The translations under genes and the position numbers were made by a program. The notes below the pieces were generated by a model. It searched no databases, was not told the DNA's origin, and saw only the letters and a program-made list of their open reading frames with translations. From Haliotis rubra (taxonomy: Eukaryota), in contig NW_025767019.1 of NCBI RefSeq assembly GCF_003918875.1, positions 620,001 through 684,000 on the forward strand: a stretch of DNA of 64,000 bases, given 5' to 3'. Positions 9,901-12,328 of the stretch are shown here, piece by piece. The first letter of the stretch is position 1. Each line of letters opens with the position of its first letter.

Positions 9901-11180
9901 GAACAGTTGAAAACAAAAAACTGAAGTTTCAACTTTTAGCTCATTTCACAGCTGACCTCACTACGATTGAAGCACTCAAAGGCAGGATGCTTCCTAACAA
10001 CATGCCAATAGACAAGTAGGCCCCATCATCAGGCACACCCTACATCAAAGGTGCAAGCTGATTACCTGCCACCCCCTTCATGACCTGCAGCTTACAGCAA
10101 CACATTGAAATTTAGTGTAATAATTCCAGCTGGGTAGTATTCTCTCATAACATGATGTTTGGCTTTCGAAAAGTCACTTTGTTGAATGTCTCAAACCCTG
10201 GATAACACGAAGTTGTTTCCAGATTCCAATAAGTTTGACACAATGAAGTCTGACTGTCATAGCAGACAGTGGCAATGACGTAGTAGAATCTGTGTACACC
10301 AGCTCTCAACCTACCTGAGAAGTGATACAGTGAGACAGACAACAGTGCGACGATTGAGGGCCTCCCCAACTGAGAAACTTGCAAGTCCACTATATTCCTC
10401 AACAGTCTTGTGGATAAGTAGCCGATGATAGCTGTTGACGGGAGGGAAGATCAGGACTCTATCAACAGCAGACATCACAAAACGTCAAACATCCCATCAC
10501 CAGAGACATGTTAATTGTTGAGTATTAAGCAAAATTCTGATAACTCCAGAGTGAAACATTATCATTAATCCTTCAAGTGTGAACCAGTAGGTGAGTGGCC
10601 TCTAATGACCAGCACTAATTGCTGGGAACCAACTGTAACTAAATATCCATGCTGGGAACCCTTTTTTCACTCTAGGCTGACTGAATGAGTCTGGTTTTAT
10701 GCCACTTTTAGCAATATTCCAGCAACATCACGGCAGGGGACACTAGAATTTTCACCCTAGGTCCCAGAGTAACATATCCTACTACTCAACATGGTTGTTC
10801 TAAAGTGTTAGTAGATAAATTGCCTCTTTTTCTCTTTTATCAATGATCCATGCTAAATATTCATTTTCCAATTCTCACCTTTGGTAGTTATTGTAGTGAA
10901 TCATGTGCCTCTGCCAGAAGACATCTGAACATTCTGATCCTCAGACAATGTCAGTGTTTAAAGTGTTTTATAGCTGAATTCTGAACCAAGAGAGTGTACA
11001 ATGAACACCAAAGAATAAATGGTTGTTTCATGTCACAGTCTATGTTTATCATACATAATACAAGCCCAATTACCTGTCAGGTTGTGCTCGTTCCAAGAAG
11101 TCTGTGATATCGGTTGTGACAAATGTAACAAACTTTGAGTCGTCTGTGTTCAGGTAGTGATTATCTAAGTAGGCCGCCAG
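971..11180 (-). CDS. R3HCC1L: R3H domain and coiled-coil containing protein (R3HCC1/R3HCC1L co-orthologue), multi-exon, 3' end outside the window
   Basis: Minus-strand GT-AG exons with compatible phases: 11180-11074 ([18 protein letters not shown]..), 10458-10315 (R3H: [41 protein letters not shown]), 6159-5956, 5306-3576 (IYVPRARR; ..[22 protein letters not shown]; one frameshift near 4004-4028), 2357-2267, 1954-1873 ([22 protein letters not shown]), 1026-~971 ([18 protein letters not shown]). These match the R3H and C-terminal RRM-like motifs of the human R3HCC1/R3HCC1L family as I recall them. Confidence 0.92.
2395..3352. repeat. ~47-bp intronic minisatellite
   Basis: Unit tcagatctgtcctacatccagctgtaggcatcacatcattcacacac with an internal cctaca/tgtagg inverted repeat; starts ~40 bp from the acceptor at 2358. 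Confidence 0.92.
7683..8662. mobile_element. Non-autonomous DNA transposon (Kolobok-like MITE)
   Basis: TIR AGGTCACATGCAAC at 7683 and GTTGCATGTGACCT ending 8662, flanked on both sides by TTAA; no transposase ORF. Confidence 0.75.
10682..10745 (-). mobile_element. 3' fragment of the short tRNA-derived SINE
   Basis: Reverse complement of the SINE tail (gtgtcccc..gctggaatattgctaaaag..gcataaaaccagactcattcag) seen at 50060 and 57028. Confidence 0.6.
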
Positions 11181-12328
11181 CTCTAAATATTTGACCTTTT
11201 AGCTGAGAACCACTGCATTTCCATCTTAATCCTGTAAGAAAGGAATCCCTGTTATAACATAAATTCTAGCATTAGTCTGTACAAATTCCCAAATTTGAAT
11301 TAAAAGCCTGCCCCATATATGACAGCAATATTATTAATGTTGTGACCTTGCAGATAAAAAAATATGATGAGGAAGAAGCTGTACTGAAAGGTTTTATAAT
11401 CTAAACTTGCAATGCTACAAATACAATACCTCTGATTATTGGGTAATGGGAACTATGCCATATCGAAAATCCAGTTCCATTTTGGGGTTGCCAATATACA
11501 AGTGCTAACCATGGATGCCTATGATTACAAACAATGTAGATGTTGTGGGTAGAGTCTGAAAAGAAATAATTATGCCTCTCTCAAACAGTTCAATAATTAT
11601 TTGTTTAAAATGGATTTTTTTAAAACAGTTGATAACTTTAAAGGTTAACAGAGCATTCAATACATTATATTGAAATTAAGTATTCACAGCCATTTATTGT
11701 TCCTGTTTTGAATGAAATGTAGGTCACCTCTGTCATATCTCCACTCCCATAACACTAGAAATGATAGGTTCTATGAAGTGGGCAATCTTAAATTCCAGTT
11801 CAGGAATCTAAGCAGACATTTGTTGCAGATCTGGGCTATGTGTTTGAGCAGGACAAAAAAAACCTAAGGATGTGTAACACTAAGTTACTGACTAAGGACA
11901 GAAGCTCTCACATGTTATTAAATAGATCTCTGTCTGTCCAACTGTTAAACACCTGGTAATGAAAATAGAAATCATAAACAAATGATCCATGGAATCCACT
12001 GAGTGAACGCTGGGGTCTCGAGTAGACTTCCTTGTGAAAGTAACCTTATTTAACATGAGATTCAACTTTTGACAGACTTTAAATTGATAAACAGATACTT
12101 GCAATCATACTTTAGACACTTCTGGGAAAGCATAAGACTTGAAAAGTCCAATGACACTGACACTGACAGGGCATATCTTTTTTGGCGAACGCTTCCTGGG
12201 TAAGTGTGTTTGGATGACCAACACTGGACAATGTGAGCTCCGTTGTAGATAACAACATGGACACGAGAATAGCGGTAAACGTTAAGAAATTACAAATTAC
12301 ATTGACGTGGATTCACCAAACTATCTAC

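Follow-up and report, generated by a model that had tools for sequence, protein, structure and literature searches.

The window analysed here is a 64,000-nucleotide (nt) stretch of Haliotis rubra, identical in sequence to contig QXJH01000345.1 of assembly GCA_003918875.1, and its main subject is a minus-strand gene of the R3HCC1/R3HCC1L family whose translation is likely to begin at a CUG codon. Positions are those of the window and refer to the minus strand unless stated otherwise; the features are collected in Table 1. The first coding exon opens at a strong acceptor (ttcctttcttacag/G, that is cag/G, at 11232/11231) and closes at the donor CAG/gtaatt (11074/11073). A spliced RNA contig (X11) joins it directly to the exon of the R3H domain, with the junction 11074/10458. 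Further downstream, after the TGA at 4006-4004, the open reading frame (ORF) resumes in a different frame from 4031 (4031-3534). Orthologues pass uninterrupted across this break (4007-4031), which is probably a one-base (homopolymer) indel of the assembly. The C-terminal exons were mapped by tblastn of full-length orthologues (P0017, P0020, P0027, P0030, P0036, P0049) against the window; since these proteins match both the R3H exon and the C-terminal exons, the two parts belong to a single gene. The predicted protein consists of an N-terminal helix, the R3H domain, a long disordered middle part and a conserved C-terminal domain.

Table 1. Features of the R3H gene in the window.
Feature	Position	Strand	Remarks
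Region with a putative non-coding leader exon (exon 0)	12319-12515	minus	from X19 depth arithmetic; approximate ends
First coding exon	11074-11231	minus	51 nt leader + 107 nt coding; sequence and RNA contigs X11, X19
Upstream ORF (uORF)	11183-11224	minus	13 codons + stop, MEMQWFSAKRSNI; in a different frame from the R3H domain
In-frame TAA closing the R3H frame upstream	11199-11201	minus	within the first coding exon
Proposed CUG initiation codon	11178-11180	minus	gagCTGg, G at -3 and G at +4; next codon GCG (Ala)
Second coding exon, R3H domain	10315-10458	minus	Pfam PF01424, E 1.9e-12; splice junctions in RNA contig X11
Third coding exon, with first in-frame ATG (6137-6135)	5956-6159	minus	sequence and NCBI model
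Large disordered exon	4004-5306	minus	frame stops at TGA 4006-4004
Remainder of the gene	954-4031	minus	continuing ORF 4031-3534 and conserved C-terminal exons
Conserved C-terminal exons	about 3573-3653, 2265-2390, 1872-1955, 954-1028	minus	tblastn of full-length orthologues

In abalone, vertebrate R3HCC1 and R3HCC1L have a single co-orthologue, the gene described here. Its R3H domain stands near the N-terminus, beginning at residue 37 counted from the CTG (residue 33-40 in many orthologues), and directly before it lies an N-terminal helix with the motif L-A-x-Y-L-D-x-R-Y-L ... F-V. The first coding exon showed 41-55% identity to 14 other loci in tblastn, and the R3H exon 66-70% identity to distant species. 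The same gene encodes the conserved C-terminal domain, a domain described as RRM-like in PMC5714202. Among the best matches are proteins from Centruroides, Branchiostoma, Schistocerca, Anneissia, Ischnura, Latimeria, Xenopus and teleosts that carry the name R3HCC1 or R3HCC1L in their source records.

In the NCBI annotation the gene is divided between a 494-aa model and 317-aa models, the former of which (LOC124284811, P0001, "uncharacterized") starts at the ATG of codon 92 and is without the R3H domain. Among 1.84 billion cluster representatives, no Haliotis protein with this R3H exon was found and no match exceeded 70% identity. When Haliotis proteins and transcripts containing exons 1-2 were sought, none was recovered: the big-exon query returned only the NCBI H. 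rubra model, and the R3H-exon query returned two non-Haliotis fragments. In Lottia, the JGI model skips the conserved first coding exon (L003, 10001-10340), and the NCBI models of the chiton, scorpion and nemertean (L002, 10001-10992; L006; L008) add unrelated upstream coding exons with an ATG, as does the submitter's model of amphioxus. These skipped or added exons are apparently artefacts of the requirement for an ATG.

A preliminary description of this DNA had proposed that the R3H frame starts at a CUG, and its reading of the start region is borne out by the sequence. The frame is closed upstream by the TAA (11201-11199); six codons further on stands the CTG (11180-11178) in its strong context, and from there the frame of the exon runs on to ...QPDR. 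As had also been described, the first in-frame ATG comes only after the R3H domain, in the third coding exon, where it is codon 92 counted from the CTG and lies in a weak context (ttgATGt). In the H. rubra sequence, no in-frame AUG lies between the in-frame stop and the conserved coding region, and the 273 nt scanned between the CTG and the ATG at 6137 contain no ATG in any frame. The uORF begins at an ATG in strong context (aagATGg, 11224-11222), seven bases inside the exon, and its TAG (11185-11183) ends 2 nt before the CTG. Compared with shuffled sequence, the first coding exon showed no notable RNA structure (z +1.0).

RNA evidence for this region came from two spliced contigs, which derive from two Haliotis organisms other than H. 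rubra. X11 (organism B, 339 nt) aligns to 11074-11213 without gaps and with 5 mismatches; X19 (organism D, 316 nt) aligns to 11074-11219, again without gaps, and has 6 mismatches there before departing from the window sequence. Both reach upstream of the TAA position; thus the stretch that carries this stop is exonic and lies inside the mature mRNA. The per-bin depths of X19 account for 93 nt of exon 2 and 146 nt of exon 1. At an X19 depth of 4.1, the depth of 1.46 in the bin 12319-12515 corresponds, by depth arithmetic, to about 70 of its remaining 77 nt, and therefore this bin would contain a leader exon joined to the first coding exon. The RNA run of X11 also gave a depth of 0.88 in the intronic bin 9364-9560; this could be an alternative exon after the R3H exon (55 nt of the spliced contig are unplaced) or an unrelated contig.

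Orthologues were gathered from the R3H exon, their DNA was retrieved and the homologue of the first coding exon was located by tblastn. At the codon aligned to the abalone CTG, 14 other loci have CTG and 2 have GTG. CTG was read in the limpet Lottia gigantea, the chiton Liolophura sinensis, the scorpion Centruroides vittatus, Branchiostoma belcheri and Saccoglossus kowalevskii, in two ENA genomes (L004, L005), in an mRNA contig (L009) and in five metagenome-derived genomic loci (L028-L032), and GTG in the nemertean Tubulanus polymorphus and in Ptychodera flava. The alignment of mollusc and deuterostome orthologues that had been suggested as a check of the CUG start thus recovered a conserved CTG in Lottia, the chiton, Branchiostoma and Saccoglossus. 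The following codon is GCN (Ala, hence G at +4) in all 16 CTG/GTG loci, and the -3 position is always a purine (G in Lottia and abalone, A in the remaining 15), so that the context favourable to near-cognate codons, a purine at -3 and G at +4, was found in abalone and in all 16. Every genomic CTG/GTG locus has an in-frame stop 9-150 nt before the codon, and an in-frame ATG falls between the two only in Ptychodera, L028 and L029 (one each). Similarity between species begins at this codon; the residues upstream of it are unrelated.

The choice of codon goes beyond what the amino acid would need. Among the other leucine codons of exons 1-2 in 12 loci, CTG accounts for 19 of 105 (18%) and TTG is commoner, while at the aligned position every locus with leucine, abalone included, has CTG and both loci with valine have GTG. 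Nine CTG out of nine at this position gave P of about 2e-7 if the lineages are independent, and the count now stands at 14 of 14. A depletion of ATG after the start was tried as a family-wide signal and set aside as too weak (21 observed against 38.9 expected, 12 loci).

The human member of the family provides the precedent, and the CUG initiation of human R3HCC1 to which the preliminary description referred is established (PMC3105428, PMC5714202). Ribosome profiling and reporters identified the CUG as the sole start (PMC3105428, PMC5714202, PMC5778536), in the site CACC-CTG-G (PMC5778536), and direct evidence of initiation exists for the human protein (PMC5714202; bioRxiv 10.1101/2022.05.02.490320). 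This start is annotated in RefSeq and GENCODE and was treated by Ivanov et al. 2011 (PMC3105428) and Tang et al. 2017 (PMC5714202); the former describes it as conserved in mammals, and the latter describes the protein as conserved in vertebrates. Mammalian R3HCC1 read-through sequences show T-L-A-L-L-C-L-D-G. The abalone and human N-termini align, as had been described, but the alignment first offered was off by one codon: the abalone CTG-GCG faces the human CUG-Ala, and a one-residue indel lies further on.

A use of ATG at this position by other invertebrates had been named as an observation that would speak against the CUG start. A few lineages do have it, whereas CTG or GTG was read in the 16 other loci. 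Two mRNA contigs of one species (L010, L011), in which the frame is closed upstream by a stop, carry ATG-GCT (M-A-E-Y-L) exactly at the aligned codon, and the R3HCC1 proteins of teleosts and coelacanth begin M-A-F/L at the aligned spot. Copepod-like metatranscript contigs begin MNFEGQNISL about two residues from the aligned codon, and Saccoglossus has, besides its CTG in good context, a weak-context ATG three codons later. Where an ATG is present, it thus falls at or within a few codons of the aligned position, which indicates that the site marks the N-terminus. This argues for an exchange of CUG, GUG and AUG at a fixed start site, rather than against a CUG start in abalone. Two further candidates for an AUG were rejected: the M of the "M-I-S-A-D-K" N-terminus of P0009 is a TTG picked by a bacterial-type gene caller, and the Capitella "MDNRYL" is, in its NCBI entry, a partial protein starting with L. 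In the first 20-40 nt of L014-L027, a 5' string (GCTTGATTCACTTCTACAAGAG) is common to at least three metatranscript sequence types with different downstream leaders; possible explanations are a conserved 5' untranslated region or a leader that the copepod-like source organisms add by trans-splicing.

An assembly error could hide an AUG. If the A run at 11197-11200 really held five A's, the ATG at 11224 would come into frame and the protein would start there, a caveat already raised in the preliminary description. It is correct that this ATG, in its strong context, is exactly one base out of frame, and the same gene likely contains a one-base frame break at 4007-4031. Moreover, an Illumina-type H. 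rubra DNA contig (X1) has 3 indels relative to the assembly within 10719-12900, a stretch of 2182 nt that contains 37 homopolymers of at least 4 nt. An extra A in the run, however, would appear in X11 and X19 as a gap or as 11-14 mismatches; both contigs cross it with 0 gaps and 5-6 mismatches, so that the error is unlikely, as judged from congener RNA. In addition, the protein would gain 14 codons for which other species show neither similarity nor an in-frame ATG, and the context of the CTG is kept as in Lottia. We consider a missing A extremely unlikely. An AUG might also be brought in by alternative splicing, from an ATG at 12463-12461 followed by G (then gtgaat) to a weak acceptor, tatttag/AG at 11183/11182, giving ATG-GAG-CTG-GCG. 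The phase is compatible by inspection, and acceptor-like sites occur 3-9 nt upstream of the CTG in Lottia, the scorpion, amphioxus and L009. Yet X11 and X19 both extend upstream of 11183, the leader of X19 falls wholly within 12319-12515, with a donor at or below about 12446 and not at 12460, and the pyrimidine tract of the 11183 acceptor is poor compared with that at 11232. Such splicing would also leave the CTG-specific conservation unexplained, and it appears improbable to us.

The NCBI model P0001 implies instead that the R3H exons are an untranslated leader and that the sole product starts at the AUG at 6137, which scanning ribosomes could reach since no AUG in any frame intervenes after the CTG. 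What this leaves without an explanation is that exons 1-2 keep an open frame, that the identity to distant species reaches 66-70% in the R3H exon and 41-55% in the N-terminal helix, which is unexpected for a leader, and that the R3H domain is recognised by Pfam at E 1.9e-12; we give the untranslated leader hardly any credence. Another non-standard route is very unlikely, whether ribosomes leave the uORF by a -1 frameshift near GCU-AAA-AGG or start at a different near-cognate codon. The uORF does overlap the start of the open R3H frame, which is -1 relative to it, but an X-XXY-YYZ slippery heptamer is missing, shuffled sequence folds as well as the exon does, and nothing comparable occurs in other species. 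The remaining in-frame near-cognate codons are in poor contexts.

Several observations weigh against initiation at the CUG and should be kept in mind. Direct evidence of initiation comes from human R3HCC1 only. The strong-context ATG of the uORF, just upstream, should capture most scanning ribosomes. X11 and X19 are known by their alignment counts (5 and 6 mismatches at unplaced sites), so that the congeners may differ from H. rubra in the TAA, the CTG or the upstream ATG, and the 3 indels of the H. rubra contig X1 lie somewhere in 10719-12900. Several other species have an acceptor-like site 3-25 nt before the CTG, the 5' end of L009 may be a retained intron, and an AUG-started extension is possible in the chiton, scorpion, nemertean and amphioxus through the upstream exons of their models, although these added extensions are mutually unrelated. 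Nevertheless, non-AUG initiation at the CTG is supported by the congener RNA contigs, by the conservation of the codon in 16 loci and by the human precedent, and we regard translation of the abalone R3H protein from the CUG at 11180-11178 as likely.

From the mRNA architecture and the conservation of the site, we infer how initiation at the CUG might proceed. The scanning 40S subunit would pair the initiator Met-tRNA with the near-cognate CUG, with the G at -3 and the G at +4 assisting its recognition. The product would begin (Met)-Ala-Ala-Tyr-Leu-Asp and would probably be processed to N-acetyl-Ala. The strong-context uORF ending 2 nt upstream might lower translation of the main ORF or make it conditional, the CUG being reached by leaky scanning or re-initiation. 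Ribosomes that miss the CUG might go on to the weak-context AUG at codon 92, and a form without the R3H domain would be possible because no AUG in any frame lies in between.

The occurrence of CTG in lophotrochozoans, in an ecdysozoan and in deuterostomes makes CUG the most parsimonious ancestral state. The idea that non-AUG initiation dates back to the bilaterian ancestor, put forward in the preliminary description, is considerably strengthened by the CTG found at the aligned codon across phyla. On balance, we lean towards a CUG start that was ancestral to all bilaterians and has remained the family's only start through more than half a billion years, apart from occasional changes to GUG or AUG. 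It may even be older than bilaterians if L028-L032 prove to be non-bilaterian.

The surroundings of the gene deserve some comments. The leader-exon region adjoins the start of a divergent gene encoding TIR_2 and LDcluster4 (SLOG) domains (ATG at 12536, plus strand), so that the two genes stand head-to-head in abalone (11231-12536). The same head-to-head pair was seen in the chiton, Lottia, Saccoglossus and Ptychodera (L002, L003, L012, L013). This divergent pair, kept between molluscs and hemichordates, probably shares a bidirectional promoter. Inside the introns of the R3H gene, the stretches 7600-8770 and 10546-10750 reached a summed contig depth of up to about 12.9 million in the DNA runs and also occur in the RNA runs; they are very high-copy repeats or transposon pieces. 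At the other end of the gene, overlapping long ORFs of a repeating peptide unit (MGLANTPRTQTTQQAYLRWGW...) on the plus strand at 246-1112 reflect a tandem DNA repeat, which lies beside or over the last mapped exon (954-1028).

If the CUG start is as old as proposed, weak, factor-sensitive initiation (control of the eIF1, eIF5 or 5MP type) would be a selected property of this family and not a mammalian oddity, and many invertebrate gene models of the R3HCC1 family would be wrong at the N-terminus. The annotation error would be systematic, as pipelines that demand an ATG truncate the gene (H. rubra LOC124284811), skip its first coding exon (Lottia) or add exons to it (chiton, scorpion, nemertean). 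Abalone, limpet, chiton, scorpion, amphioxus, acorn worm and human form a codon-for-codon series with CUG, GUG and AUG at one site. Such a series could serve to study how a weak start is maintained and which context underlies the unusually efficient CUG of R3HCC1, a question left open in PMC5714202. Our literature searches found nothing on a non-AUG start of an invertebrate R3HCC1 or R3HCC1L. Our results thus support, at the level of sequence, a non-AUG-initiated orthologue of a human gene known to be CUG-initiated, with an apparently unexpectedly deep conservation.

Few main ORFs start at a codon other than AUG, and most such starts have been documented within mammals or vertebrates only. EIF4G2 (NAT1/DAP5) has a GUG-initiated main ORF; as proposed for the abalone gene, its conserved main ORF starts solely at a non-AUG codon in strong context, but it encodes an unrelated protein and uses GUG instead of CUG. 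Mammalian GTF3A starts at CUG, and other animals have AUG at the equivalent codon (PMC5714202). The exchange of AUG and CUG between lineages at a fixed start position is common to both cases; in GTF3A, the non-AUG start is derived and restricted to mammals, whereas in the R3HCC1 family CUG is widespread and it is AUG that looks derived (teleosts, the copepod-like group and the species of L010/L011). The closest known system is human R3HCC1 itself, with which the abalone gene shares the gene family, the aligned codon followed by Ala, the type of context, an in-frame stop upstream and a first in-frame AUG far downstream. The two differ in that six out-of-frame AUGs follow the CUG in the human mRNA and none in that of abalone, that in abalone a strong uORF stops 2 nt short of the CUG, and that the abalone gene is a single pre-duplication orthologue. 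Finally, the papers on R3HCC1 describe its conservation only within mammals or vertebrates, whereas here the codon was followed as far as molluscs, a chelicerate, a cephalochordate and hemichordates.

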